This document shows, piece after piece, positions 11,124 through 55,422 of a stretch of DNA of 64,000 nt. Made by a program: the position numbers and the translations under genes. How positions within the stretch are numbered: position 1 is the first letter of the stretch; every line of letters starts with the position of its first letter. The stretch is taken from the sequence record MT366760.1. The stretch is one strand, 5' to 3'. The notes below the pieces were generated by a model, which saw only the letters and a program-made list of their open reading frames with translations, did not search any database and had not been told where the DNA came from.

Positions 11124-11212
11124 TGTAAATAGTTGGTATGAACGCTAGCCGAGGACGGATGAATGTTCTCGGCTTTTCTAATTTTAATAACCCGATAACT
11201 GAGGGAGCACTC

Positions 11213-12829
11213 ATGGCACGTAAAAAGAGTAGCACTCCGCAACCTGGTGAATACAACTTAGTTCCCGCAGGATTGTTTAGTGTTAACCATAGCGGGATGG
11301 GGTTGTATGTTCGTTACTGTAAGAACCCTAACCGTATTGATGTTGTAGAGATGTCGCCACGACACGTTTATATCAAGTGTCCTGACCGAGACCTCTATTT
11401 GGTCAGTGCTGCACACCACGCATCACACCTACGACCATCAGCAGGTACATACGATAAGTATGTTAACCTTAGCCTATTCCACGATCTCAACGCTGTAGAC
11501 CACGACATCCCTTACTACATGGTGAATTATACTCAGTCACTAGGTAAAGAAGACAAGTCCCATGGGAACCGCAGACTAGACCCACGACCAATCGGGGAAA
11601 AACAAAGCAAAATTATTTCGGACTCAGGCGGCTTCCAAATTCTAATGGGACGCACCGAATACATTGACCCTCTGCAGATCATCCAATGGTATAACGAAAA
11701 CGTTGATGTCGGTCTAATTCTCGATATCCCAACATTCGTTAACAAGGATGGGTTACTCGACCGTCTAGCACGTATCCAACAAAAGAATACCCAAATCATG
11801 TTGGACAACAAACGTGACACCCTTGAACTAATGAACATCTTCCATGGACACACACCGGAGGATGTACGTAAATTCCGTGAAATAACTGAACACCCTGACA
11901 TCAACCGACTAGCGTTTGGTGCATCTTACTTGGATACCGTTATGTCTAGTCTTGGTAAGATTGCTGAAATGATGCACACGGGTAAGAAGTATGACCAGTA
12001 CCACATGTTGGGCGTTGCAAACCTGAAGCAAGTATACCCACTTATCTACATGGCTAAGAAGGGATTCGCTCCAGAAATATCTAGTGATGCTTCCACATGG
12101 CTACAGGAATCTACTTCAAAAGGCTACTACCACCAAGAGCACATTTCGGAACCACCTGGCTTCATTAAAATGTTCGACAAGGTAAATGCACCATCACCCT
12201 ATAATACACTACCATGTAATTGTCCTGTGTGTAGCAACATTAAATACACAGATGCACTATCAGTGATTAATGGTAACGTGACAACATTCCTCATGGCTCA
12301 CCATAACATGTATGCCTACAATAATGTCGTGCAAGCGATGAAAGGTATCATGGCGGAAGCATCCCTTAAGGAAATTAAGGAACTCGTTGCACGCCAATTC
12401 AGAACACGTAGTGGTAAGGATGAAGCACTCAAATCATTCGACTTTATCGAATCTATTTCTGAACATGGTGTTGATTCCTCGTACAAGAAGTTCGGCTACT
12501 ACTTGAACTCTATGAAGAGTAACATGTCTAGTAACAAGACACTCTTCGGTAAGGAGGAAGAGGATGTTGGTGAAAACGGTATCGTTCAGATTGCTGATGA
12601 CGACCCACGCCTGATTCGCACACTTGAAGTATGTGATATTTACGAAGGTAAAACTGAGCGTAAACATGGTGCTAAAAATGCCAACGCGAAGAAAACGGGA
12701 CACTTGAAAGCTAGCTCTGGTGCTAAGGGAACGGCGGGTAAACGTAAGAAACCTAAAAAGGTAAAGGCGAAAGCTAAAGACACTAAGAAGGTGACTACCA
12801 ATGCCAAAGCAAAGAGTACGAAAAAGTAA
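11213..12829 (+). CDS. tRNA-guanine transglycosylase-like / DpdA-like base-exchange enzyme
   Basis: DSGGFQ (catalytic Asp), LILDIP, YHMLGV, SSDAS (second Asp) and Zn site CNCPVC...HHN; basic C-terminal tail. Start refined to ATG 11213 (RBS GGGAG). Confidence 0.88.
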   Translation: MARKKSSTPQPGEYNLVPAGLFSVNHSGMGLYVRYCKNPNRIDVVEMSPRHVYIKCPDRDLYLVSAAHHASHLRPSAGTYDKYVNLSLFHDLNAVDHDIPYYMVNYTQSLGKEDKSHGNRRLDPRPIGEKQSKIISDSGGFQILMGRTEYIDPLQIIQWYNENVDVGLILDIPTFVNKDGLLDRLARIQQKNTQIMLDNKRDTLELMNIFHGHTPEDVRKFREITEHPDINRLAFGASYLDTVMSSLGKIAEMMHTGKKYDQYHMLGVANLKQVYPLIYMAKKGFAPEISSDASTWLQESTSKGYYHQEHISEPPGFIKMFDKVNAPSPYNTLPCNCPVCSNIKYTDALSVINGNVTTFLMAHHNMYAYNNVVQAMKGIMAEASLKEIKELVARQFRTRSGKDEALKSFDFIESISEHGVDSSYKKFGYYLNSMKSNMSSNKTLFGKEEEDVGENGIVQIADDDPRLIRTLEVCDIYEGKTERKHGAKNANAKKTGHLKASSGAKGTAGKRKKPKKVKAKAKDTKKVTTNAKAKSTKK

Positions 12830-13270: not shown

Positions 13271-14218
13271 GTGTCAGACTCTATGAGCTACCTAAAGGCT
13301 AACGACCCCAATGAGATGCAGTTGTCATCTAATCAGATATTCACATTGTTTGACGACCTGATTTATCGAGCAGTAGACTGCCTGATTGATAACTGCGACT
13401 TCGTTGACAAATCATTAGCCTCAGTATTATCTTGGTATAACGCCAACAAGAGAAGACGTTTAAGTAGATTAGTCCGACAAGAAGCTGTCAGCTTAATGAT
13501 GAGCTACCTGATAACACCCGACCGCGAACTTAAGAAAGAAATACTCCGCGAGTTGATGTTAGAAAGGGGTTTAATGTTAGCTATACTAGAACAGTTCCTT
13601 GTAGTAACTAAGAACTACCAAACGTGTGTCCACCGAACAATAAATTTTAACTCTCGTTACTATAATTCGGTGTCCCAAGAACGCAGGTCTATTGAGAGAC
13701 AAGTCGGTGTTCTAAAGGATGGGAACTTGTATTGCGCAATCAACACTATTGACCTGTGGCATTCTACAGCTATAGATATGCGTAATAGGATAATGCGTAA
13801 ACACACTAGATACATCTTTAGTAAAGTTCGTTCAGAAGGTAATCGGGCAACCACGCCTATAGACTTGAATGACATGGCTCAGAATTATGTAGTCGCACTA
13901 CTCAAGGCTATCTATAAATACTTACCTGAACGTGGTACTTTCCAATCGTACCTTGAATACTGGTTACTTGATGCTAAGACCAACAGTGGTTCCAAACACT
14001 ATTATGGTTTAGCCTTTGATGTGCCCAGTATGGAAACTTTAGAAAAGAATTCACTCTCAAATTTATCTATCCCTCTATCAGCAGAAGAAGTTCAGATGGT
14101 GTCTACTCATGGCGTCGAACAGGAAGTTTGCGATAACTCGCATATCCTTAGAATCCGTGAGTTAGCTTTATACGCAGATCCACTTGGATATGCACGTGAA
14201 GCGTTAAACATCGACTAA
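13271..14218 (+). CDS. Phage RNA polymerase sigma factor (sigma70-like region 2)
   Basis: DLNDMAQNYVVALLKAIYKYLPERGTFQSYLEYWL resembles sigma regions 2.2-2.4. Confidence 0.75.
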   Translation: MSDSMSYLKANDPNEMQLSSNQIFTLFDDLIYRAVDCLIDNCDFVDKSLASVLSWYNANKRRRLSRLVRQEAVSLMMSYLITPDRELKKEILRELMLERGLMLAILEQFLVVTKNYQTCVHRTINFNSRYYNSVSQERRSIERQVGVLKDGNLYCAINTIDLWHSTAIDMRNRIMRKHTRYIFSKVRSEGNRATTPIDLNDMAQNYVVALLKAIYKYLPERGTFQSYLEYWLLDAKTNSGSKHYYGLAFDVPSMETLEKNSLSNLSIPLSAEEVQMVSTHGVEQEVCDNSHILRIRELALYADPLGYAREALNID

Positions 14219-22087: not shown

Positions 22088-22926
22088 CTGTAACTGATAA
22101 CATACTGGTGACGCCTAAGAGCATACAAGTAGGGCTTGCTACACTACTCCTAGGTAGGGGTGACACTGCAATCCACGCTATGTCATCCGTTGGTCAGAAT
22201 ATAGTTTTCGTTAACAGGGCTGACAAAATAGCATGGACACCTGGTAGTTGGAGTAATGCATTGGAGAATACCAAGTGGACTCCTTACACACGGGTTGGGG
22301 GTACATATCACTTAGAAGAAGTTGCTCAGAGTGTTGATTCCGACGTGTTAATAAACCCAACGTGGACTTCAACTATAACGTCTAATAGACGAGACTACGT
22401 CCTTTATATAAAATTAGACCAAGCTCAAACAGGGGTTTATTTCTTGTGTTATACTGAAGACGATACCCCAATCTTTGAAAGTACACCAACGGATATGGAA
22501 GCAGGTGAAGTAACTATAGACCTACGGGCTGGTGCAAATGGTCCTGGCTTCCTTGATTTGAACGGTGGGATAGATTACAAATTCAGTTTACTTTCAGAAG
22601 ATGGTGACGTTAGAGTATTAGGTAGCTCAAGCCTTGGGCTGCCCTACGTTAAACTTACGTGGCAAGAATGGGCTGATGTAGCTCAAGCAACCGTAGACGA
22701 CATACCCACAGCAGAAGAACTTTTCATTAACCCATCCTTCGTTGCAATAGATTCATCCAACCCCGATGTTACCTATGGTGGTTTTTCAACAACGGGTAGG
22801 ATACGTAAACGCGTAATTAGCACTAATACAGACACCTTCTTCCAATCGTCAGTAACAACACCAGTCACAGATGCTTCCACATGGACTGACTGGCAAAATA
22901 GGGAGAGCTTAACTTATGCCAGTTAA
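21979..22926 (+). CDS. Virion-associated protein, C-terminal part (-1 frame)
   Basis: Open frame 21979-22926; GTG 22108 lacks an SD; T/G/S-rich composition typical of structural proteins. Confidence 0.6.
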   Translation, partial: CHSIKRADGSGTDFSGISSNHIPAIGSDGRPYDSGLAVTDNILVTPKSIQVGLATLLLGRGDTAIHAMSSVGQNIVFVNRADKIAWTPGSWSNALENTKWTPYTRVGGTYHLEEVAQSVDSDVLINPTWTSTITSNRRDYVLYIKLDQAQTGVYFLCYTEDDTPIFESTPTDMEAGEVTIDLRAGANGPGFLDLNGGIDYKFSLLSEDGDVRVLGSSSLGLPYVKLTWQEWADVAQATVDDIPTAEELFINPSFVAIDSSNPDVTYGGFSTTGRIRKRVISTNTDTFFQSSVTTPVTDASTWTDWQNRESLTYAS

Positions 22927-25900
22927 CTACACGTCTGGGGAACTAAGATTGTCCGGAACGGTAACTAATGCTGAGTTCTACGCTGCAACATCAACAGCGG
23001 GACTAAGCCGTAACACTGAAAACCAATATGAACTAGGTGCTAATATGCGCGTTATGTCGGGTGCCGACGTATCCGGACTTAAGAACTTTATACTTGCTCT
23101 TAACACCTACGAGATCTATAGTGAAGACCCCTCAATAGTGTTCAACCAGATAACGTTCATCGAGAGTGAGGGGCGTACCACTGCCGACAGGGTAGTATTC
23201 AAAACAGCGGGTTCTGGTAAGAACCCTATACTTAATGACTGCCAATTCCTACACAACATAGTGGGTAACCCAGGGGGCGGAGACCCTAGATACTTGACCA
23301 TGGCACACATTGGGGGTGCTTCCAACAGTGTTTTCCGCGCATCTGATTTCTCGGAACAAGAAATAGACGGTGTCCAACTAATGGAGAGCGGTGTTTACCG
23401 TAACATCTCTGGCATACGTGTTAAACGCTTCATCGCCAGTTTAGACCCAGATGATAATGCTATACGAGTTATACTTAAAGACCTAAAACAAAGTTCAAAG
23501 TTATACGGGACAGGTGGTTTGATTTGTGCGTATTCTGGTTCATCCGTAATGGTCGTAAACTGGGATAAAGAAATACTTAACTCAGGTGCAACTAACAACT
23601 GGTTGGATAACTACAACGGACACCTAAGCGCCCACTGGGTATACATATTGGGTTCTGCTGCGGATGAATATCAAAATAATGGTGCAGGAATTTCACAAAA
23701 GAAAAACACTTTACACGTAGTTAAAGGTGGATATAAATATTACAAATTCATTAACGGCGAAGGTGGTACATTCTGCTACTTCGATAGTCGTGGGTCTTCC
23801 CCACAAGCGTGCTCCCCTACAACGACACGTTCAGATATGCTGGAAACCGATACAACCCTATCTATTCCAGCAGACGAAGAAATAGACTTCGTTACACAGA
23901 CCTTAACGTACAACCGTGATACGGGTTCATGGGTACAAACCAACATAACTGGACATAGATTTCTAGTTCGTAAATACGGTTACTTAGAAATAAGTCAAGA
24001 CCTAGATAATCCGGAAGCCGTAGAAGGATCACCCGAAGCTTATTCACCTTTCTTAATGGGTTTGGATGACTCTATTGGTGAAGTTGATTCAACGGTAGTA
24101 GCAGCGTATACAGGAATAACAATTAACAGCTCTGCTAAGACGATAACTATTACTAGCGGGTCTTGGACACCACAAAAGATATACGACTACTGTAAGTATT
24201 GGTTAACCCAGAACATGGATGTGGGGAATTTTGTCACAGCATCAGGGACTAATTATGAGTATACTTACAGATGGGTTTTAAATGGAAGCGCCAATCTACA
24301 ACACGACCCCGATACCCACAAAGTAACTTTTAAAGATATTGATATCGGAATATCACCTTTACATTTGATTGCGGGATCCTACGTGTACGGGGTGGAAACT
24401 GTTTCTGACGGTGTAACTACTTATTCCTCACGTGAGGGTCTAGTAAACGACGTAAGCCTAGGTAGTACCCATGGTTTCAACGCTACTTACCGTGAATCAG
24501 GTTGCCCAAAAATTGATGGAGGTACCTTTACATGGAACGGCGGTATTATAACTACACCTACTGCACTATCAGTTGAAGACGGTCAACTCTTACTACGTAA
24601 AGGTGAACTAGATGTGTCCTCCTATGATTCCTCAAATTCGATAGGACCTACACTGTGGTTAGAATCCGCTGCTGATACACTGCAATTCGAAAACTTAATA
24701 GTAACTTCTAATTCTGCACGTGAGGGTCTAATAGTATTATTTTCTAAGGAACCAAATACATTTGATAATGTAACCATGTTGAATGGTGGTGGTTTAGGTT
24801 TTGGGGGTTCAACACTTTTCGAGACGGATGGTACAACGGCTAAGATAATAGAAATAAAAAACTATGAAGCAACTGGTGGTCAGGGTGCTGCGAGATTCTG
24901 GCGTCGTAACTACCTAAAACTTATTAACTATAATCTAGGGTCTGATATCGAAATTAGCGGTATGTTAACTGCGGGTAACTCGGAAAACAGGGGTATCATT
25001 GATATTTACCGTGAGGTTGACTTTCATGTAACGGATGCAACTGCCACCAATATTGAGGGTGCAAATGTCTATTGTATTGACACAGACGATGGTAATAGAC
25101 CTGCCAACTATATGGGGCACTCATGGACAGCGGATAAAGAATACCTGCGGTCTACTGATTCCACAGGTCGGACTAGTACTATTGAAGTAAACTTAGCTAA
25201 CATGGTTAAAACTGGTAATAATAGTGCAACTACAGGTATAGTTAGGTCATATAGGGGACTGGACGGGGACACTTCTGACAAATTCAAGTTCTACTTCTAC
25301 CACTACAATTATCTGATTGCTAATACAGTTGGTACCCTGGGTGGTAAGGGTATACTTACGCTACAGCAAACTATGCAAGAAGACCCAGCTATAACGGAAA
25401 CAGACTCCACAATAGTAGCGGCATATACGGGTATCGCCATTGACCACAGTGCTAAAACAATAACTTTGACGTCAGGGACGTGGACATCCAACGTTATTTA
25501 CGACTACGTTAAATATAATAAATGTTTGAGTGCGAATGTAAGTAAACCTTCTGTACTTGAGAGCGCAATAGAATTCAGTGAGGGTAGATTCATATCCCGC
25601 TACAGAATTCTAGTGAAGCACACTGCCCTTTTTGATATTGGATCTGGTCATCCTCTAACGTTCACTTCAGACGTAGCAACTCCTAACTTGTCAGGTGAGG
25701 GTTCAATTACCTTTGGCTCCGAAACTACAGTTAACGGTATCACTTCTTATGATTCGGGAACACTTGTTAATTTTGAAAAAAATAACACGTCTTGGTATCA
25801 GAATCCTGTTATGGTGTTGGATGGTACACTAGTGTGGAAAGGGGGTGAATTAGAAGTACAATCACCCCTGATAACTAGTCCAGACCTAAGCATGGTAGTT

Positions 25901-28690
25901 GACAAGGGTACCATAAAAGTTAAAGATCACTCATTGACGTCACCTTACGAAATAAACTTTGGCTCTGATAACATCACACTTACAGACTTCACTATTGATG
26001 GTCGTGGTACCTTCATTATAACCAGTGACTTAGTAATCAGTAAGTTTACGGGTAAGAACTACGACGGTATATTCCCTTCCGGTAAATTCCGTGGGTCATC
26101 AACTGATTTCTTAGTGGTACGTGACTACGAAGGTATTGGTTCATTTAAAGATCACACACTATGGCGACGAAACAAGATACAGTGGTACAACTCAGTTAAT
26201 GGTTCTAACATAAAAGTACTGGGTAAAGAAACATCTAGTAGCACACAACATACAGGAATATCTGAATTCTGGTCGGAGATAAAGATCCATGTGACCGACC
26301 CCGACAACAACGACCAAGAAAATGTTCGTGTGGCTCTAAAAGATTATGATGATTCAAATAGGACTGATACTTCATCCCTTACGGGTTCCGCATCCTCAGG
26401 GCATTATAACACTGGTTTTGATTATACACCGGATAGGACGTATACTGAAGTAACCGACGTCGAGGGGCTAACACCTATTATCCCCGTGTTATTCGCAGTG
26501 GTAGACAGGTCAGTGGGTGGTGCACAAGCTACACCTACTTCAGATTGGTCATACCGTTCTAAGAACGGTGATAACTCTGATGAATTCGAAGTCTTTGTAT
26601 GGCAATATGGTAAGAACGTTGCGACATCTGTAATATCATTAAAAGGAGCGGGGGTAAAAGAAACTAAGTTAGTTACAACAACGGATATTAACGTAACAGA
26701 AACCGACAAATCAGTTGTCTCCGCCTACACGGGTATAGGTATTGACCACACAACCAAAACAATAACCATTTCTGCACAACGAACGTTGGCAGAGATATAC
26801 GATTATTTGCTTTATGACAAGACAACTATATCGGGTGTATACCATCCTACGTTGGGTACTAAAGTAGCAGGTATAGTTGGTGCAACAATTGACATCAAAG
26901 ACTACAATCTTATAGTTGATGGTGCAGACATAGTTGCGGGTTCAACAGGTTTTAACCTGTTGCAAACAACTGGTTTAATAACACTACAGAATACTGCAAC
27001 GATTGACTTCAACTTCCTAGATCAAATAGGTAACGCGATAGTAACTATTGATTTACCCGCCAACTGGAACTTAGAAGGTGTATATCCTAGTCAAAATGAT
27101 GCACTGGCAAAAACCAACAAGTTGCCAAATTCGAACATCAACTATAAGTATCTTACAACATCCGAGGGTGGTAACACTATTTGGATGAGGATAGAGGACT
27201 CCGATGGTCAGGGTATAGCAGTTGATTCCTACGAGTTGCCTATAACCCGAGGTGTGTATGAAACCGCCGCCGTTACTTCAACCGAAGATAGTTTATTAAA
27301 CCAGATTCGTGCGATAGTTCGTGATACTAAAACCATTACGGAAGATATACAATCCGAAACTGGAGGGGGTCTATCACAAAATTACTTCGATGACTTCCAA
27401 AAGAGAAGTGGTTACAACTTAGCAACTGTTGAAGAAGCTATTAACGTGGACTTTTCTGGTAACTTGGCTGCCTATGTCAACATGGGTTTCCGTTGTCCAG
27501 TAGGTAAGAAAGGTGGTAGCTTAGTACCCCGCCGCGGTACTGCTATATCTAAGGTACGTTTCTATGTGGGACAGGCCTTCCACATAGGTACGAACACTTA
27601 TATGGGTGGTACTGTTCAATTCAAAATATGGCGAACCAATGGCCCTGGTACACTAGCCGACGGTAACTTCGGGGATGTCGTGTGGCAGTCGCCAGAAACT
27701 TATCAGTTAGACGACCTGGAAAACGTCGGCTCTAATTCAGTAGTCGGATCTGGCTACAACCACGTCCACCGTTCTAAAGAATTCATCATGGAATCTTCCG
27801 GTATGATTCTAGAAGAAGACTATTACTTTGGTTTTGAAGTCATCACGGGTGAAGCGCTAACACCGATAAACCTGAGTGATTCAGGTCATGACTACGGGGG
27901 TTTATACTATGAACACCATAGATTGAGTGGTTGGGAGTCTAATAGCCCTGGTTACATACGGTACGCCGACGGTGGTAGACCTGTACCCGTGGATATAACG
28001 GAATACAACTACAACTTGATAACTCAGTATAAGCTTAAGGCAGACATCGACGACATTAAGGACGTAACGGATAAAGTATCATTCAACGCAGACAACGACA
28101 TTATAGCAACTCTTGATAATGAACTCACAGATATCATGGATGTATCTAAACGCGCACCCTACGTTTATGTGGATGGATGCCCGACAGCAGAAGCCAACGG
28201 TGCATACAGATTATTGTCCACGGATGAAGTTGATTGGCTGAACGCTAATGGTAACTTAGATTCTGATATTGCGGCAGGTGACACTGCTGTTTTAGATAGG
28301 TCACAACCCGTATATGGATTAGACCGGAATGAATGGGTGTTGGGTGCAATGGAAGGTGAATACGGTTATAGACTATTCCCTGTACAAAACACAACTACCT
28401 ATTATTCTTCCAATAACGGTTTCTACGACCTAGCACAGGAAGTTTCTGGTGACCCCACCGTTGGTAAATCATGGTATGCCTTAGCAGGGAAATTCGACGC
28501 TGACAATTTAGTTGATGGTGCTAAAGTTTCCATAATGGTTGTACTTAATACACCTACTATGTTGGATGACGTTAAAGACAGAACTGACCAACTACAATTC
28601 ACAGATCAACGGGTTGACGCTAATGTACCAGATCAACTTACTGAATCAGAGTTTGATACAAAACGACTGGCTAAGAAAGGGTGGCGCTAA
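22916..28690 (+). CDS. Giant (1924 aa) virion fibre/adhesin-like protein with internal repeats
   Basis: T/S/G/N-rich and beta-rich. Three copies of ETDS.VVAAYTGI.I.H..KTIT....W....IYDY; C-terminal domain shared with the 30872 ORF. Confidence 0.75.
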   Translation: MPVNYTSGELRLSGTVTNAEFYAATSTAGLSRNTENQYELGANMRVMSGADVSGLKNFILALNTYEIYSEDPSIVFNQITFIESEGRTTADRVVFKTAGSGKNPILNDCQFLHNIVGNPGGGDPRYLTMAHIGGASNSVFRASDFSEQEIDGVQLMESGVYRNISGIRVKRFIASLDPDDNAIRVILKDLKQSSKLYGTGGLICAYSGSSVMVVNWDKEILNSGATNNWLDNYNGHLSAHWVYILGSAADEYQNNGAGISQKKNTLHVVKGGYKYYKFINGEGGTFCYFDSRGSSPQACSPTTTRSDMLETDTTLSIPADEEIDFVTQTLTYNRDTGSWVQTNITGHRFLVRKYGYLEISQDLDNPEAVEGSPEAYSPFLMGLDDSIGEVDSTVVAAYTGITINSSAKTITITSGSWTPQKIYDYCKYWLTQNMDVGNFVTASGTNYEYTYRWVLNGSANLQHDPDTHKVTFKDIDIGISPLHLIAGSYVYGVETVSDGVTTYSSREGLVNDVSLGSTHGFNATYRESGCPKIDGGTFTWNGGIITTPTALSVEDGQLLLRKGELDVSSYDSSNSIGPTLWLESAADTLQFENLIVTSNSAREGLIVLFSKEPNTFDNVTMLNGGGLGFGGSTLFETDGTTAKIIEIKNYEATGGQGAARFWRRNYLKLINYNLGSDIEISGMLTAGNSENRGIIDIYREVDFHVTDATATNIEGANVYCIDTDDGNRPANYMGHSWTADKEYLRSTDSTGRTSTIEVNLANMVKTGNNSATTGIVRSYRGLDGDTSDKFKFYFYHYNYLIANTVGTLGGKGILTLQQTMQEDPAITETDSTIVAAYTGIAIDHSAKTITLTSGTWTSNVIYDYVKYNKCLSANVSKPSVLESAIEFSEGRFISRYRILVKHTALFDIGSGHPLTFTSDVATPNLSGEGSITFGSETTVNGITSYDSGTLVNFEKNNTSWYQNPVMVLDGTLVWKGGELEVQSPLITSPDLSMVVDKGTIKVKDHSLTSPYEINFGSDNITLTDFTIDGRGTFIITSDLVISKFTGKNYDGIFPSGKFRGSSTDFLVVRDYEGIGSFKDHTLWRRNKIQWYNSVNGSNIKVLGKETSSSTQHTGISEFWSEIKIHVTDPDNNDQENVRVALKDYDDSNRTDTSSLTGSASSGHYNTGFDYTPDRTYTEVTDVEGLTPIIPVLFAVVDRSVGGAQATPTSDWSYRSKNGDNSDEFEVFVWQYGKNVATSVISLKGAGVKETKLVTTTDINVTETDKSVVSAYTGIGIDHTTKTITISAQRTLAEIYDYLLYDKTTISGVYHPTLGTKVAGIVGATIDIKDYNLIVDGADIVAGSTGFNLLQTTGLITLQNTATIDFNFLDQIGNAIVTIDLPANWNLEGVYPSQNDALAKTNKLPNSNINYKYLTTSEGGNTIWMRIEDSDGQGIAVDSYELPITRGVYETAAVTSTEDSLLNQIRAIVRDTKTITEDIQSETGGGLSQNYFDDFQKRSGYNLATVEEAINVDFSGNLAAYVNMGFRCPVGKKGGSLVPRRGTAISKVRFYVGQAFHIGTNTYMGGTVQFKIWRTNGPGTLADGNFGDVVWQSPETYQLDDLENVGSNSVVGSGYNHVHRSKEFIMESSGMILEEDYYFGFEVITGEALTPINLSDSGHDYGGLYYEHHRLSGWESNSPGYIRYADGGRPVPVDITEYNYNLITQYKLKADIDDIKDVTDKVSFNADNDIIATLDNELTDIMDVSKRAPYVYVDGCPTAEANGAYRLLSTDEVDWLNANGNLDSDIAAGDTAVLDRSQPVYGLDRNEWVLGAMEGEYGYRLFPVQNTTTYYSSNNGFYDLAQEVSGDPTVGKSWYALAGKFDADNLVDGAKVSIMVVLNTPTMLDDVKDRTDQLQFTDQRVDANVPDQLTESEFDTKRLAKKGWR

Positions 28691-48777: not shown

Positions 48778-49094
48778 TATCTTCTTCTCCACTTGTTCTG
48801 ACAATATTGACGACCGTCTTTCTTTAACCATAGGTGCTGTTGTCTAGCCCGTACACGTGCACCCTTGCCGTTATCACCGCGAGCTTTTCTACCACTGAAC
48901 TTGTTTTGGGTGAAGTAATCCTCTTCAGGAATATCACCGAACTGTGCATAATAGTCTTCTCTAATTTCTATCTCTTGTGCTATTGCAGCCATGATGCCTT
49001 GAGCAAGTAGGGTTCGTGTGATTCGTCTAGGTCGCATACACGAACTACAGCCGCAGGTCGGTGAACAATTAGATTGAAATACGCTATACATCAT
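48777..49094 (-). CDS. Hypothetical protein
   Basis: ORF with a basic C-terminus; start uncertain. Confidence 0.5.
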   Translation of the reverse strand: MMYSVFQSNCSPTCGCSSCMRPRRITRTLLAQGIMAAIAQEIEIREDYYAQFGDIPEEDYFTQNKFSGRKARGDNGKGARVRARQQHLWLKKDGRQYCQNKWRRR

Positions 49095-49308
49095 CCCCCT
49101 CCGATGGGTTGAACATCAACCAGAACATATAAGTCAAACATACGACGAACCCTACACCACTATTGATAATCATCGTCCACATGATATAACCGTCTAGATC
49201 ACCATAGTCAACACCATAAACTTTGTAGGCTAGATAAAGACCTATGAATACCGACATTAGCCCGATTTCAAACTTGATGAATCTCCACATCCACTTTAAT
49301 ACGTCCAT
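49084..49308 (-). CDS. Small membrane protein
   Basis: Two hydrophobic helices; RBS AGGGG. Confidence 0.6.
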   Translation of the reverse strand: MDVLKWMWRFIKFEIGLMSVFIGLYLAYKVYGVDYGDLDGYIMWTMIINSGVGFVVCLTYMFWLMFNPSEGDDV

Positions 49309-49311
49309 AGT

Positions 49312-51315
49312 CTACCCCTTAATCATACGAAAGTGATAACGTTCTGCATCACCTTTGTGTTCAATGTAGTTACCATCGCTCTGCATTTCCCACAGACCTT
49401 TGGATGACACCAGTTGTTTCTCTAAATCACTTATGATTGTTGCACGATGCTCCGGATTTAGAATAGGGAAGCATACCTCAACACGGTTGTATAAATTGCG
49501 CTCCATCCAATCAGCCGATGAGCAATATACTTCTTGAGTCTCACCGTCAGAGAAGTAATAGACTCGCGCATGTTCAAGGAAGCGACCAACCACAGACACG
49601 ACACGAATGTTTTCCGACATCCCCTTTACTTGTGGCACTAGGCAACAAATGCCGCGAACAATGATAGTGATCTTAACTCCCGCCTTGCTCGCTTTGTACA
49701 ACTCATCAATCATCTTCTTATCACACAACGAGTTCATCTTAAGTGTAGCACAGACGTTTGAGTTGTCCTTAGCTTTCTTAGCGAGTTGTCGTAGTTTACT
49801 TACAAAGGCGTCCGCAATGTTATTTGGACTAGTAATAAGCTTCTTCAAGTTTGGCTTACCTAGACCCGTGATAGTATTGAATACTTCGCTGACCTCATGT
49901 GTCAATTCAGGGTTGGTAGTCAATACACCATAGTCGTCGTAGACCTTAGTGGTTAATGAGTGGTAGTTACCCGTACCGAGGTGGGCATAATGCTTGATAC
50001 TCCCGTTCTCATCACGGCTAACTAGACTCATCTTAGCGTGTGTCTTCTTACCGATAACACCGAACACTACTAACGCACCTGCTTTTCTCAAGCGTGCTGC
50101 TAATTCAAGATTGGTACGTTCATCGAACCGCGCTTGAATCTCAATGACTGCCGTAACTTGCTTACCGTTCTCAGCCGCTTGTACAAGTGCATCCGCGATT
50201 TCGCTGCCCTCACCTACTCGGTAAACTGTTTGTTTAATAGATCTAACTCGTGGACACTCTGCTGCTTGACGCAAAAAGTCAACGACAGGTTTAAATGAAT
50301 CGTAGGGGTGGTGAAGTAACACGTCACCCTCATCAATCACATCGAACATCCCACCATTAGAGCCATATGACATCTCACGACGTTCGTGTTGTGGGAACAA
50401 TAGTTCGTCTGGTGCATCGTCGATAAGTGGTTTAAAGCGTGAGAAATCAATAATCTTCTGACGTGAGATACACTCAACCGTCGTCATACCGAATGAATCT
50501 ATTAGGCGGTTAACCAATTTCTTAGGCATAGACTCGGATACTTCCAAACGAACAGGTGCACCAAATGGGCGCTTCTTCAATTCACCACGCAGCTCCTGTT
50601 CAAGTAATGCCATTGATTTAGCATTGACTTTCATATTAGCAGAACGTGTAATTCGATATTGATGCCAACCTTTGACTTTCAAACCTGGGAATAGGGAAGC
50701 AGCGTGTTCCTTAATTAGTGATGACAGCGTTATATATGTTGCGGAGTCACCCTCAATACGTACCAAACTAGGTAGGTTATTTGGTAAGTGCATTGATACT
50801 AGTCTGGTTTCACGTCCCAAACTATCGTCACCTTTAAGCTCAATCAGGAAGTGGAGTGAACCGCTAACCATCGACGGGAAGGGGTGGGATACGTCAAGTG
50901 ATACAGGACTGAGTAATGGACGTACTTGATTATTAAAGTAGTCTTCAGTGAACTTGCGTTGCTTCTTACCACGTTCACGGTGGGTCAGGACACTGATGTC
51001 ATGTTTATTAAGTTCTTTCATCAGCATCTGAAAGATAACGTGTTGCTGTGATACTAAGTCATCGTTATCCTGATATGTTTCTAGTAGGGTCTGCATCGGT
51101 ACACGACCGTCAATGCTGCGAGGCGTCTGACATTTGTTAGCCTTCTCCACTAACTTACTAGCACGCACCTCAAAGAACTCATCTAAGTTCGAAGCCGAAA
51201 TGAGCAGATAACGGAAACGCTCCATGAGGGGTAGCGTTGTATCCATCGCTGTATTTAGAACACGACGTGTAAATGCAAGAGTTGAAGTCTCGCGGTTGAT
51301 ATATGTAGTTTTCAT
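49312..51315 (-). CDS. ppk1: Polyphosphate kinase 1
   Basis: NRE..LAF..RVL, SNLDEFFEVR, HPFP, HHPYDSF, KQTVYR, ARFDE, KTHAK (autophosphorylated His), HLGTGNY, KMNSL, IVRGICCL, GRFLEH and SADWMERN...RVE motifs. Confidence 0.97.
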   Translation of the reverse strand: MKTTYINRETSTLAFTRRVLNTAMDTTLPLMERFRYLLISASNLDEFFEVRASKLVEKANKCQTPRSIDGRVPMQTLLETYQDNDDLVSQQHVIFQMLMKELNKHDISVLTHRERGKKQRKFTEDYFNNQVRPLLSPVSLDVSHPFPSMVSGSLHFLIELKGDDSLGRETRLVSMHLPNNLPSLVRIEGDSATYITLSSLIKEHAASLFPGLKVKGWHQYRITRSANMKVNAKSMALLEQELRGELKKRPFGAPVRLEVSESMPKKLVNRLIDSFGMTTVECISRQKIIDFSRFKPLIDDAPDELLFPQHERREMSYGSNGGMFDVIDEGDVLLHHPYDSFKPVVDFLRQAAECPRVRSIKQTVYRVGEGSEIADALVQAAENGKQVTAVIEIQARFDERTNLELAARLRKAGALVVFGVIGKKTHAKMSLVSRDENGSIKHYAHLGTGNYHSLTTKVYDDYGVLTTNPELTHEVSEVFNTITGLGKPNLKKLITSPNNIADAFVSKLRQLAKKAKDNSNVCATLKMNSLCDKKMIDELYKASKAGVKITIIVRGICCLVPQVKGMSENIRVVSVVGRFLEHARVYYFSDGETQEVYCSSADWMERNLYNRVEVCFPILNPEHRATIISDLEKQLVSSKGLWEMQSDGNYIEHKGDAERYHFRMIKG

Positions 51316-51344
51316 TGTTGTTCCTCATGTGTGACGACACACTA

Positions 51345-51352
51345 TATTTACA
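51345..51352 (-). promoter_or_regulatory. TGTAAATA phage promoter motif upstream of ppk1
   Basis: Reverse-strand TGTAAATA 30 nt upstream of the ATG, followed by a GTGTG-TCGT-CACAC hairpin and RBS GAGGA. Confidence 0.6.
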
Positions 51353-51399
51353 TAACTATATGCGGTGGCTCCCTTCTAGAACCACCTGATATGGCTACG

Positions 51400-51606
51400 C
51401 TACGCTTCCTCGAAAGACAAGTCAGGTATTTCTTTTGTCGTTTCATCCGATTCATATTCAGCACGCAACTTCGCTACCCTTGCCGCTGTTTCATTCCCAT
51501 CAACCCACGCATTGAATTCTGCCATTCCCATTGGGCGTAGATCTTTCGCTTCAAATCCATTCATAATCTTAATCCTGTTTTCACTGGTATTAGCAAGCAC
51601 ATCCAT
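51400..51606 (-). CDS. Hypothetical protein
   Basis: Short ORF with RBS GAGGA. Confidence 0.5.
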   Translation of the reverse strand: MDVLANTSENRIKIMNGFEAKDLRPMGMAEFNAWVDGNETAARVAKLRAEYESDETTKEIPDLSFEEA

Positions 51607-51679
51607 TATAACATAGTCCTCATGTGATTGCAAATATTGTAAATAGCCACGTAACCATTGACCAAACTAGGAGATACAA

Positions 51680-52204: not shown

Positions 52205-52526
52205 GGGTAACGACTTCATTAATTCGCGTGCTGATCTTGAAAAGCGTGTTGGCTCACTCCTATGTGCTTACCTATCAGTACATCAACCATCAGACATTAT
52301 GCCGTGGTGTGAGAAGTTCAAAGCGCACATCATGGACAAAATCAAAGGTTCTGAAGTTGAATTCGTTAAGATGAAATTCGAACCAGATGGTGGTCAACTA
52401 CATTGCCATATTGAAGTTCAGATGGATTGTGGTTCTGTAGAAATGCACCACCGTTACACATTCACCCAACAACTCGGAGATGCTGAAAATGGCGAAGAAG
52501 AAGAAGGACAAAGCGAAGAAAGCTGA
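52197..52526 (+). CDS. Hypothetical protein
   Basis: 109-aa coupled ORF. Confidence 0.65.
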   Translation: MSKGNDFINSRADLEKRVGSLLCAYLSVHQPSDIMPWCEKFKAHIMDKIKGSEVEFVKMKFEPDGGQLHCHIEVQMDCGSVEMHHRYTFTQQLGDAENGEEEEGQSEES

Positions 52527-53157
52527 TAAAAAGTCCAAGTCCAAGAAAGGGAAATGGCTCAAAGCTGATGACCCCTTGAAGCGCTTCAAAGTCAGTAAGT
52601 ATTGCAACGAGAAATATGACCCCGTGTTGTTCAACCTACGCGAAAATCCGTGGGGATTGTTCTCTAACTTTGCACCAACACCCTTCATCGCCCCACCACT
52701 ATGGGGTGGAGATCCACGCTTGTGGTTCAACAACGAGCAATGGTTCATGGCTCACAAGATGGATGTGGATAATGGCGGTTCTGCAACTGCTGACCTACTC
52801 AACAAGATTCTGTGGGCATACCATCCTGACAAGTGTCGTTACTTCGCTAGCCAGAAGGCGGGTGGGTTGATGCGCGAAAACTGGGACAAAGATAACCAAC
52901 TCCGTCACACTGTGATGCTTGTAGGTCTACGTCATAAATACCAACAGAACCCACTAGCTGCACAAGCACTCATTGAGAGTGGTGAGCGCTTATTAGTAGA
53001 GAACGTTAGCTTTGACGACTACTGGGGTAATGGTAAAGACGGTAACGGTAGTAATAACCTAGGTAAACTCCATATGATAGTTCGTGAAGAACTTCGTTCC
53101 GGTGAATTGCCTATCCTGAATAACACACAACTAGCCGACTTGGTAGGAGGACACTAA
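52489..53157 (+). CDS. NADAR/YbiA family protein with Lys-rich N-terminal tag
   Basis: FSNF, EQWFMAHK, W....VM..GLRHKY.QN and LVEN..FDDYWG.G.DGNGSNNLGKL.M.VREEL motifs. Confidence 0.88.
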   Translation: MAKKKKDKAKKADKKSKSKKGKWLKADDPLKRFKVSKYCNEKYDPVLFNLRENPWGLFSNFAPTPFIAPPLWGGDPRLWFNNEQWFMAHKMDVDNGGSATADLLNKILWAYHPDKCRYFASQKAGGLMRENWDKDNQLRHTVMLVGLRHKYQQNPLAAQALIESGERLLVENVSFDDYWGNGKDGNGSNNLGKLHMIVREELRSGELPILNNTQLADLVGGH

Positions 53158-53438
53158 TGTTCCAATTAAAACTCCTGTGGAAAGCTATCACTACTTTTCA
53201 GACACTGAAGAAAGCCCGTAGCTTATTCCATGCAGCACCAACTCTTTATGACCCACAATTCCTTGATGAGTACGACTGTCAGCACAAGGTTATTCGTGGT
53301 GGTAAAGAACTGTGGGTTCCCGCTCGACCGTACGGATTGCAGGGTGCCTATCTCAAAACCCGTTTGACCCTAGCGTGGGGTGTCCTTACCGGACGCTATG
53401 ACGCACTAGACTGGAAGGACGGGGATAGCCATGGCTAG
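53157..53438 (+). CDS. Hypothetical protein
   Basis: 93-aa coupled ORF. Confidence 0.65.
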   Translation: MFQLKLLWKAITTFQTLKKARSLFHAAPTLYDPQFLDEYDCQHKVIRGGKELWVPARPYGLQGAYLKTRLTLAWGVLTGRYDALDWKDGDSHG

Positions 53439-54141
53439 AGAAGTAGAACGCAAGTGGTTAGTATCACGGAAGTCCACTCAGAAGTATCTGAACGTTATGC
53501 TATCACCACAGACTATCGGTGACTCACACTTCTACCCACAAGTAACACGCACCTTTATCAAGCAACACTATTTGGTAGATGCTAACGCTATGGTGTCCTT
53601 TAACACCCATGAGTTAGTGTGGGATGTCCTGATTAAGAACGGATGTGACCATCCTGTTACTTTCCGTATACCAATCAAACCATCTGATATTACCCAAGCT
53701 CTAGAGATATTTGGTAACCGTCAGGTGACTTCATTGGAACTGGACAAGGTTGATATTAGCATCCGTGCTACACCACACAATTCTAATCTTGAATTCCGTG
53801 TTAAAATCGACCATCCTAAAGGTGGGCGCTACGAATTCGAGAAATCAATGTCTAATAACGTTGCGAGTGGTGTACTAGATTTCGTGTGGCGTGACTTCAT
53901 GCACAATAACCCGTACAAGGTAGAAAAGACACGTTATGAGTTCCTTTTACTTAATGGTCTGAAACATTCTATTGATATGTTTGGTGACAATGACGACACC
54001 TACTATGAGATAGAAGAAACATCTGGTTCGTCTTCAGTTAACGACATCAATCTACCCGTGGATATTGAAGTCATCGAAGAACTAACTGGTTCCTATGGTA
54101 ACAAGGAACGTGCTATTGCTTATGGTAAAGCACATAGTTAA
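53431..54141 (+). CDS. CYTH-domain (triphosphate tunnel metalloenzyme) protein
   Basis: N-terminal EVERKWLV (ExExK), IKQHYL, RYEFE, VEKTRY and IDMF...YEIE motifs. Confidence 0.75.
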   Translation: MAREVERKWLVSRKSTQKYLNVMLSPQTIGDSHFYPQVTRTFIKQHYLVDANAMVSFNTHELVWDVLIKNGCDHPVTFRIPIKPSDITQALEIFGNRQVTSLELDKVDISIRATPHNSNLEFRVKIDHPKGGRYEFEKSMSNNVASGVLDFVWRDFMHNNPYKVEKTRYEFLLLNGLKHSIDMFGDNDDTYYEIEETSGSSSVNDINLPVDIEVIEELTGSYGNKERAIAYGKAHS

Positions 54142-54231: not shown

Positions 54232-55422
54232 ATGCGATTACTTAACTTACGCGACAAGGTAGTCATCTACCATGCAGGGTGCTTAGACGGTATGGGTGCA
54301 GCAGCTACCTTTCAGCACTGGCTGCTAAAACGTTTGGAGATTCAATCAGGTTGCGACAAGACTTTTGTCCATCACGTTACACACGCTCAACTCGATGAGA
54401 GAACTGCTGCTCACGTTATTCAATATGGTGTGAAACATTCTGAGCGTGCTAGCCTGAGCCAGTCCCAATTCACATTGGATGTTGCATATGTACCTGCTGT
54501 CTACGGTAAGGACTATTCTGACTTAAATCAGATGGGTGCTAACGAAATTGAAGACTCCCTGCACGTTGCTTACCATGAGAAGGACGTATACATCGTTGAC
54601 TTCTCATTGCCTATCGAACAGCTTGTTAAGATTGCTGCGGTCGCTAACTCCGTAACTGTTCTTGACCACCATCATACTGCATTTGAAATGTACAAGGACT
54701 GGTCACCCGAAGAGATGCCATACAACGTTAACATCGAACTAGAATACGCTCGTTCTGGTGCAACACAAACGTGGTGGTATCTAATGGGTAACGAAGATTA
54801 CCCAATGCCTATCCGTCACGTAGAAGACCGCGACTTATGGAAGTGGCAGGTTGACGGTACAAAAGAATTCACACTTGCCATCTACAACGGTGATGACTCG
54901 TTTATGAAGAGTGTCGTCGGTTGGCAACGTCTGTTATCTTTCCAACCCGCGACGTGTGAAGCTAACTATAACGCTCTAATCGATAAGGGTCGCATCTTCA
55001 AAGAGTACCAAGACGTTTCGATTAAGAAGCATATGAAGTATGTACGCTTCGTCAAACTAGCAGGCGGTATGTACAACGTCCCTGTAGTTAACGTCACTCG
55101 TGACATCACCAGTGAGATTCTTGAACAGATTATCATTGAACATAAAGCACCATTCGCAATTGCATTCATAGATGGTCCTGATGAACGTTGGTGGTCGTTG
55201 CGTTCTAAGTTCCTACCTGATGGTAACCCAGACTTCCCTAATGCGGTTGACGTTAGTGAGATTGGTAAAATCATGGGTGGTGGTGGTCACCAAGCAGCAA
55301 GCGGTTTCTCAACGCCACACTACGTAGCACCAGAAGAACTAGACCGATGGGCTAACACTGTACTCATGCAGCAACAGCAGAAAGCCGAAGAACACTCACA
55401 ATGTCAATGTGGAGATCACTAA
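54232..55422 (+). CDS. DHH/DHHA1 phosphoesterase
   Basis: YHAGCLDG, IVDFS, LDHH, VEDRDLW, SLRS and GGGGHQAASGF motifs. Confidence 0.9.
   Translation: MRLLNLRDKVVIYHAGCLDGMGAAATFQHWLLKRLEIQSGCDKTFVHHVTHAQLDERTAAHVIQYGVKHSERASLSQSQFTLDVAYVPAVYGKDYSDLNQMGANEIEDSLHVAYHEKDVYIVDFSLPIEQLVKIAAVANSVTVLDHHHTAFEMYKDWSPEEMPYNVNIELEYARSGATQTWWYLMGNEDYPMPIRHVEDRDLWKWQVDGTKEFTLAIYNGDDSFMKSVVGWQRLLSFQPATCEANYNALIDKGRIFKEYQDVSIKKHMKYVRFVKLAGGMYNVPVVNVTRDITSEILEQIIIEHKAPFAIAFIDGPDERWWSLRSKFLPDGNPDFPNAVDVSEIGKIMGGGGHQAASGFSTPHYVAPEELDRWANTVLMQQQQKAEEHSQCQCGDH

Follow-up and report, generated by a model that had tools for sequence, protein, structure and literature searches.

The cultured, lytic Vibrio phage vB_VcorM_GR7B (hereafter GR7B) very probably possesses a competent, selected, and phage-owned polyphosphate kinase 1 (PPK1). 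In the current study, we describe its gene, ppk, which lies at 49312..51315 on the minus strand of the 64-kb window analyzed here (the final 64 kb of record MT366760.1, a complete myovirus genome of 207,758 bp) and which, by the list of open reading frames (ORFs) and the GenBank annotation alike, encodes 667 amino acids from an ATG start (GR7B_00219; QJT71017.1). GR7B was isolated from oyster-hatchery seawater on strain RE98 of Vibrio coralliilyticus, a pathogen of oyster and coral. The full explanation that we favor, in which an active phage-owned PPK1 is expressed during the replication phase and acts as a phosphate and energy buffer, is in our judgment about as probable as all others together.

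A preliminary description of the window, made from the DNA letters, had overstated the novelty of this gene, as GR7B_00219 was labeled "polyphosphate kinase" in GenBank before our analysis and viral ppk genes have been published from metagenomes. The enzyme family itself is textbook material; what is new is a divergent, phage-lineage PPK1 in a culturable phage-host pair, which is rare in cultured phages. A literature search found no paper describing the GR7B genome and none in which "polyphosphate kinase" and "jumbo phage" occur together; GR7B and its sister phage GR11A are mentioned in a review as phages considered for biocontrol in oyster hatcheries (PMC8300737).

Family membership, ownership, and origin of the phage PPK1

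On profile comparison, the membership of the GR7B protein in the PPK1 family is beyond doubt. The four Pfam domains PP_kinase_N, PP_kinase, PP_kinase_C_1, and PP_kinase_C are all present at near full profile length (residues 5-109, 118-294, 323-485, and 493-656; E = 1.7e-27 to 4.7e-67), the NCBIfam PPK1 equivalog TIGR03705 is matched with 759.9 bits against a cut-off of 465.85, and the cut-offs of the subfamily models NF003918 and NF003921 are likewise exceeded. The E. coli PPK structure 1XDO aligns over residues 4-629 with 353 bits, and the two proteins resemble each other in their four-domain layout, their length, and the His and Arg/Asp/Glu contacts to ATP and Mg (1XDO/1XDP). The preliminary description had correctly placed the ORF and had read four PPK1 motifs from it, namely KTHAK, HLGTGNY, RFLEH, and SADWMERN..RVE; all four are found in the translation, lining up with H435, H454, H592, and R621/E623 of E. 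coli PPK.

Catalytic residues were mapped by aligning the proteins of GR7B and GR11A to the PPK of E. coli MG1655. His435 is the phospho-enzyme site of the E. coli enzyme, His454 is taken here to have a catalytic role as well, and the list of ATP/Mg residues is presumably that given for the active-site tunnel of 1XDO in the E. coli structure paper. The equivalents of His435, His454, and His592 are His426, His445, and His582 in GR7B, all of them kept in GR11A, and N43, R366, R396, Y459, D461, P497, R554, R611, and E613 of GR7B correspond to N45, R375, R405, Y468, D470, P507, R564, R621, and E623 of E. coli. Thus, all 12 catalytic or ATP/Mg residues that were checked, including the three histidines, are conserved in both phages, while the position of Q674 is variable even within bacterial PPK1s. 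In the E. coli enzyme, H435 and H592 touch the ATP phosphates, and replacing them abolishes the synthesis of inorganic polyphosphate (polyP) (bioRxiv 10.1101/630129). Across 51 proteobacterial PPK1s, 154 alignment columns are at least 95% conserved; both phage proteins leave 123 of these unchanged and both are altered at 22, and the active E. coli enzyme itself deviates at 46 of the 154. There is no sequence sign of a dead enzyme, and the earlier reading of an intact PPK1 holds at the level of domains, equivalog score, and checked residues; the GR7B protein is most likely an active enzyme.

Among 5.8 billion proteins, the sole close relative of the GR7B PPK is that of GR11A (QJT71231.1), at 70% identity; the next best match stands at 45% and belongs to assorted Gamma- and Betaproteobacteria, and the identity to E. 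coli PPK is 33.5%. When a single genome of each bacterial species was scanned, matches of 40-44% were obtained in Zooshikella, Pseudomonas, Azotobacter, Halomonas, Acinetobacter, and Burkholderiales, with no Vibrio PPK1 among the best 80 matches. Because bacterial matches reach 45% at most and no Vibrio protein is found among those best 80, a recent capture from the host and a chimeric assembly are both excluded by these comparisons.

The GR11A gene is an orthologue that shares with GR7B the divergent junction next to ppk, the host strain, and the isolation source. The two genomes are collinear over approximately 19 kb around ppk, with the junction of divergent transcription preserved, and at 70% identity PPK ranks among the better-conserved products of this region, in which the others range from 24% to 79%. 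Between the two ppk genes, nonsynonymous divergence (dN) is 0.25, synonymous divergence (dS) is saturated, and dN/dS is about 0.14; identities at the first, second, and third codon positions are 0.74, 0.82, and 0.41, respectively. Purifying selection on ppk in both phages is clear from this dN/dS and from the saturation of third positions against the conservation of first and second ones. The evidence for ownership and selection comes from the only two genomes of this lineage, GR7B and GR11A, which were independently sequenced and assembled. By UvsX, the nearest other phages are jumbo phages of Pseudomonas putida and Erwinia (40-49%), and no PPK match was found in them by tblastn of phage records, which places the gain of ppk after that split and before the split of GR7B from GR11A; by this comparison, ppk was present in the common ancestor of the two.

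A 5-kb stretch around ppk matches the complete GR7B genome at 100% identity. No compositional break occurs at ppk, and phage genes and phage motifs stand on both flanks. The preliminary description had pointed to phage-like codon usage, and the gene does fall within the phage range (z = -0.84; GC content at third codon positions 0.43 versus 0.40 +/- 0.04). The GC content of the Vibrio host is similar to that of the phage, and codon usage, which was compared with phage genes and with no host codon table, is a weak argument for domestication. The broader contention that the gene belongs to the phage and is not a contaminant is borne out by the synteny with GR11A, the purifying selection, and the identity of no more than 45% to non-phage proteins.

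The origin of the gene was examined with a maximum-likelihood tree of 70 PPK1 sequences, none of them from Vibrio. The proteins of GR7B and GR11A group together with 100% support, their shared stem measuring 1.48 substitutions/site against a median tip of 0.23, and fall inside the gammaproteobacterial set with a Shimodaira-Hasegawa-like approximate likelihood ratio (SH-aLRT) of 95, among PPK1s of the Pseudomonadales, Oceanospirillales, and Legionella type and far from E. coli PPK. Support for this placement is lost when a divergent clade from the IMG/VR collection (see below) is removed, and an approximately unbiased (AU) test does not reject a clade of the phage PPKs with E. coli PPK (p = 0.057), both being long branches. 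The naming of a donor lineage was dropped, since the placement loses support with a changed taxon set and the AU test gives p = 0.057 for the E. coli clade. The best bacterial matches, at 40-45% over the full length, are PPK1s of the Pseudomonadales, Oceanospirillales, Moraxellaceae, and Betaproteobacteria (e.g., Pseudomonas, Zooshikella, and Kangiella), from which the phage pair differs by its far longer stem and its taxon-set-dependent placement. The tree is that of an old capture of a proteobacterial-type PPK1 followed by fast evolution.

Two less favorable accounts of the gene can be weighed against this evidence. That ppk is an assembly chimera or contaminating host DNA would be in line with the bacterial look of other PPK matches in phage and viral collections (IMG/VR contig L084, Acinetobacter phage MD-2021a, and a 1.8-kb Escherichia phage record); however, the GR7B protein is at most 45% identical to any non-phage protein and 33.5% identical to E. 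coli PPK, its orthologue sits at the same place in the independently assembled GR11A genome, and phage genes and motifs surround it in an unbroken composition, so that we regard this account as practically negligible. Very unlikely, too, is a neutral passenger or an enzyme of lost or changed activity left over from horizontal transfer. The long stem, the 22 substitutions at conserved proteobacterial positions, and the lack of a PPK family in PHROGs, which fits rarity in cultured phages, speak for such a remnant; against it stand a reading frame that is unbroken in both phages, between which synonymous sites have reached saturation (dN/dS ~0.14), the retention of every checked active-site residue, the conserved promoter motif described in the next section, and a degree of conservation exceeding that of most neighbors.

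Promoter motif and gene neighborhood of ppk

A promoter-like motif, TGTAAATA, is located 29 nt 5' of the ppk ATG (51345..51352, minus strand), followed by a Shine-Dalgarno sequence, GAGGA, read from the sequence 6 nt before the start codon (51322..51326, minus strand). The preliminary description held that the same motif precedes the replication genes of the phage, and this was substantiated by its enrichment, its intergenic position, and its conservation upstream of the GR11A gene. The window contains 15 copies where 4.55 +/- 2.14 are expected, a number reached in 0 of 100 shuffles; examples lie at 11124, 14225, 15281, 18846, 19915, 32965, 51345 (minus strand), 51638, and 54179. In the whole GR7B genome, counted in four pieces, there are 29 copies: 19 fall in intergenic DNA, which makes up 8.1% of the genome (binomial P = 1.6e-14), and 12 lie no more than 100 nt upstream of a start on the same strand. 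The motif often follows directly upon a terminator hairpin (GGGGCTTTTTCATCT-TGTAAATA), and no conserved -35 element was found near it across the genome copies. In GR11A, TGTAAATA stands 32 nt before the ppk ATG and also upstream of the orthologous divergent operon and of the DHH gene (both described below); the copy at ppk is contained there in a small upstream ORF whose end overlaps with the start of ppk, and the small flanking ORFs are not the same as in GR7B.

The genes accompanied by TGTAAATA are those of replication, recombination, and nucleotide metabolism, and the structural block (113-148 kb) has no copy in front of it. Judged by this company, the motif behaves like a predicted replication-phase (middle) promoter. 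The late promoter of phage T4, TATAAATA, is recognized by gp55. Like it, TGTAAATA is a compact, A/T-rich 8-mer, different at one position and without a conserved -35 element; unlike it, TGTAAATA precedes replication and nucleotide genes and not the structural block. The likeness to the T4-type late promoters is one of form and does not place the motif in that class, as it accompanies the wrong class of genes and the sigma-like gene of the window matches only weakly. That gene, at 13283..14218, encodes a protein with a weak match to Sigma70_r2 and is a candidate reader of TGTAAATA.

Further elements surround this motif. A sigma-70-type promoter, TTGCAA-17-TATAAT with an upstream TG, agrees with the consensus at 10 of 12 positions (51605..51633, minus strand); it lies upstream of the 68-residue ORF that precedes ppk, and its hexamers and spacing are identical in GR11A. 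Transcription of ppk may therefore start from both TGTAAATA and the sigma-70-type promoter. Two hairpins flank the motif. A short one (GUGUG/CACAC; 51329..51342, minus strand) falls in the predicted 5' leader, between TGTAAATA and the Shine-Dalgarno sequence, and the core of a stable RNA hairpin (51364..51386, minus strand) lies between the small upstream ORF and TGTAAATA. The 90-nt stretch containing the latter folds with -30.4 kcal/mol (z = -3.6); it lacks a U tract and was not called in a terminator scan, and it would be a weak terminator at most. A second TGTAAATA on the plus strand (51638..51645), which is kept in GR11A, faces the divergent plus-strand operon of hypothetical genes, a NADAR gene, and a DHH gene.

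The GR7B annotation confirms the earlier statement that ppk sits among phage hypotheticals, as nearly all of its neighbors are of this kind. Upstream, GR7B_00220 (51400..51606, minus strand) encodes 68 amino acids with no family match. Downstream, an ORF of 74 codons (49084..49308, minus strand) begins 3 nt after the ppk stop and is probably co-transcribed with it; two hydrophobic stretches suggest a membrane character for its product, for which no family match and no GR11A counterpart were detected. In the divergent operon, a NADAR-domain protein (52480..53157, plus strand; Pfam E = 1e-21; phrog_1017) carries a lysine-rich N-terminal extension, is 64% identical to its GR11A counterpart, and shows weak similarity to an anti-phage NADAR model; as an enzyme of the kind by which ADP-ribose adducts are taken off, it points to ADP-ribose chemistry and not to polyP, and is possibly a counter-defense gene.

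Two other genes of this operon were considered as enzymes of polyP metabolism. The DHH/DHHA1 phosphoesterase (54232..55422, plus strand; phrog_4771) has an extra insertion of ~100 amino acids near its N terminus, and its predicted structure (pLDDT 88.9) has NrnA, pAp phosphatase, GdpP, Rv2837c, and RecJ as neighbors. A PPX1-like exopolyphosphatase was rejected, with no exopolyphosphatase among the top 50 structural neighbors, and on the predicted model the protein is more likely a nanoRNase or a (cyclic) dinucleotide phosphodiesterase than a polyphosphatase. An ORF of 236 codons (53431..54141, plus strand) starts with MAREVERKW, which is ExExK-like; its assignment to the CYTH/triphosphate-tunnel enzymes was dropped in view of the lack of any Pfam or PDB match and a single-sequence model with a pLDDT of 38.7. 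This protein is an orphan, with no homologue among 5.8 billion proteins and no GR11A counterpart. In E. coli, ppk forms an operon with ppx, whereas GR7B ppk has no adjacent ppx and stands behind a phage motif; no ppx, pstS, phoA, or phoH is annotated in GR7B.

Elsewhere, the window encodes a primase, a TGT/DpdA-like protein, the Sigma70_r2-domain protein, UvsX/RecA, an Mre11-like phosphoesterase, a Rad50/SMC-like ATPase, and a pol III-like protein, and its largest gene (22916..28690, plus strand) specifies a hypothetical protein of 1,924 amino acids without an NCBIfam match. The nucleotide genes of GR7B comprise NrdD/NrdG (anaerobic NTP reductase), ThyA, DHFR, MazG, a Nudix enzyme, and the 7-deazaguanine pathway. 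To the latter belong the TGT/DpdA-like transglycosylase (11138..12829, plus strand) and, at 54-57 kb and 100-102 kb of the genome record, two queC-like copies, a QueD-like 6-pyruvoyl-tetrahydropterin synthase, a radical-SAM protein, and GTP cyclohydrolase I. Judging by these genes, guanine in GR7B DNA is probably replaced by a 7-deazaguanine derivative.

Viral ppk genes beyond GR7B and GR11A

The preliminary description had held that PPK1 is not a standard auxiliary gene of phages and had called for a search of phage databases. When 50,697 deposited phage records were searched by tblastn, 17 matches were obtained, among which GR7B and GR11A are the only convincing cultured carriers; the remaining matches are unannotated gut contigs, contigs of Acinetobacter phage MD-2021a with an Acinetobacter-like PPK, and 1.8-kb records. 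The two cultured carriers and the absence of a PPK family from PHROGs support the statement as far as cultured phages are concerned, while the viral ppk genes published from metagenomes restrict it. Such genes have been described as ppk/ppk1 "auxiliary metabolic genes" of cold-seep viruses (PMC12106651), in viruses of reservoir sediments (PMC13188868), and, as cited in the latter paper, in activated sludge (Li J et al. 2025 Water Res 268:122678). They share with GR7B the idea of a PPK on viral DNA, proposed to modulate the phosphorus storage of the host; they differ in coming from uncultured contigs, for which contamination is hard to exclude, whereas GR7B and GR11A are cultured, fully sequenced, and have a known laboratory host.

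Several deposited "phage" records have a bacterial-looking PPK, including those of Acinetobacter phage MD-2021a (115-144 kb) and the 1.8-kb records of Escherichia/Salmonella phage. In IMG/VR, the PPK of the 41-kb contig L084 groups next to Bordetella in the tree, a placement that makes host DNA its probable source. The bacterial-looking records call for caution in counts of viral ppk genes.

A scan of IMG/VR with GR7B-specific peptides found no close relatives of the GR7B PPK. A profile scan of the same collection found 16 viral contigs with PPK1, 15 of which form a long-stemmed clade of their own, with the catalytic residues kept. With one member of this clade as query, over 100 protein clusters were obtained at identities of 45-86%, and the longest contigs of these clusters pile up at 180-273 kb, with none above 272.5 kb; bacterial PPK matches, by contrast, come from contigs that can reach several Mb. 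The genes flanking the clade's ppk are mostly without a Pfam match, and the matches that do occur are to ribonucleotide reductase, a divergent family-B DNA polymerase, helicase, GIY-YIG, an Amidase_3 lysin, an Mtd_N tail-fiber domain, and tail-fiber-like PHROGs. The clade probably represents uncultured jumbo phages, widespread as a group, whose PPK1 was acquired independently of the GR7B lineage. A more general account, in which PPK1 has been acquired recurrently by large phages and the fast-evolving enzymes have perhaps shifted in function (for example, to a polyP-driven regeneration of nucleoside triphosphates (NTPs) that resists nucleotide-depletion immunity), appears unlikely to us.

Proposed role and significance

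PPK1 catalyzes the reaction ATP + polyP(n) <-> ADP + polyP(n+1), and it can also phosphorylate other nucleoside diphosphates (NDPs) using polyP. The transfer of the ATP gamma-phosphate to polyP is reversible (PMC2923150). In the mechanism that we propose, PPK1 would be made during the DNA-replication phase of infection and, while ATP is plentiful, would bank phosphate as polyP. As replication of the 208-kb genome raises the NDP/NTP ratio, polyP, including that stored by the host, would be drawn down into ATP and other NTPs, and the gain from such a buffer would be greatest where seawater is poor in phosphate and once host gene expression is shut off. We put the chance that this phosphate and energy buffer is the specific role of the enzyme at somewhat below even. 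In its favor are the many nucleotide genes of GR7B and, as a precedent for polyP mattering to phages, the dependence of P1 and fd on it (see below). Among marine phages, cyanophages carry pstS, phoA, and phoH, which are thought to relieve the phosphorus limitation of phage DNA synthesis. The first of these is the commonest auxiliary metabolic gene of phosphorus transport (PMC12106651). The cyanophage genes act on the uptake and scavenging of phosphate, whereas PPK1 would act on an intracellular polymer and the ATP pool.

Several points weigh against the buffer role. No polyP gene module stands beside ppk, because the DHH protein is of the NrnA/pAp-phosphatase type and the CYTH-like neighbor is an orphan without a usable model. 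The direction of net flux is not readable from sequence, and overexpressed PPK1 in ATP-rich cells chiefly makes polyP, which favors synthesis-centered roles over NTP regeneration. The Vibrio host should own a ppk, so the benefit of a phage copy is an assumption. Finally, the 22 changes at conserved positions and the long stem of 1.48 substitutions/site may leave room for an altered specificity.

Two other roles for an active enzyme have to be set beside the buffer. The phage may instead raise polyP to rewire its host and not as a store, a regulatory role that we consider possible, if clearly less probable than buffering. PolyP activates Lon, leading to the degradation of ribosomal proteins and the release of free amino acids, and it alters the behavior of RNA polymerase or the degradosome; in P1, it reportedly supports late phage transcription. 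The intact predicted enzyme and the promoter evidence fit this role equally well. As cited in PMC2435150, P1 and fd need polyP in order to grow lytically (Li, Rao and Kornberg 2007), a requirement that, with the breakdown of ribosomal proteins by polyP-activated Lon cited there too, can be read in the same sense, and extra PPK1 in ATP-rich cells leads to polyP accumulation, as with the E. coli enzyme produced in plants (bioRxiv 10.1101/630129). The locus, however, offers no pointers to Lon, RNA polymerase, or degradosome partners, and the class of motif ties ppk to replication and nucleotide genes and not to regulators. Quite improbable, in our estimate, is a counter-defense role in which PPK remakes ATP and NTPs from polyP against immune systems that deplete ATP, deoxynucleoside triphosphates, or NAD+. 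Immune effectors that cleave ATP are known (Rousset et al. 2023, in the reference list of PMC13188868), and the divergent operon beside ppk contains NADAR and NrnA-like DHH proteins, families that are plausible in defense or counter-defense; yet this is an argument from gene context, ppk lies on the strand opposite to these genes, and the polyP-driven phosphorylation of ADP cannot rebuild an adenine nucleotide that has been cleaved.

For marine bacteria, polyP is a major reserve of phosphorus and energy, and at sea the synthesis of phage DNA is limited by phosphorus. Until now, metagenomic contigs have been the only source from which viral ppk genes were inferred, with contamination as a standing worry, and GR7B and GR11A offer a practical system for asking whether a viral PPK1 makes polyP, burns it, or signals with it. 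The function of metabolic genes in these phages is also of applied interest, given their consideration for biocontrol. With a textbook enzyme and an annotation already in place, the gene comes as no surprise but offers a useful lead. If, as in the less probable general account above, at least two lineages of jumbo phages have captured and kept PPK1 independently, long and DNA-hungry infections might generally require control over polyP.

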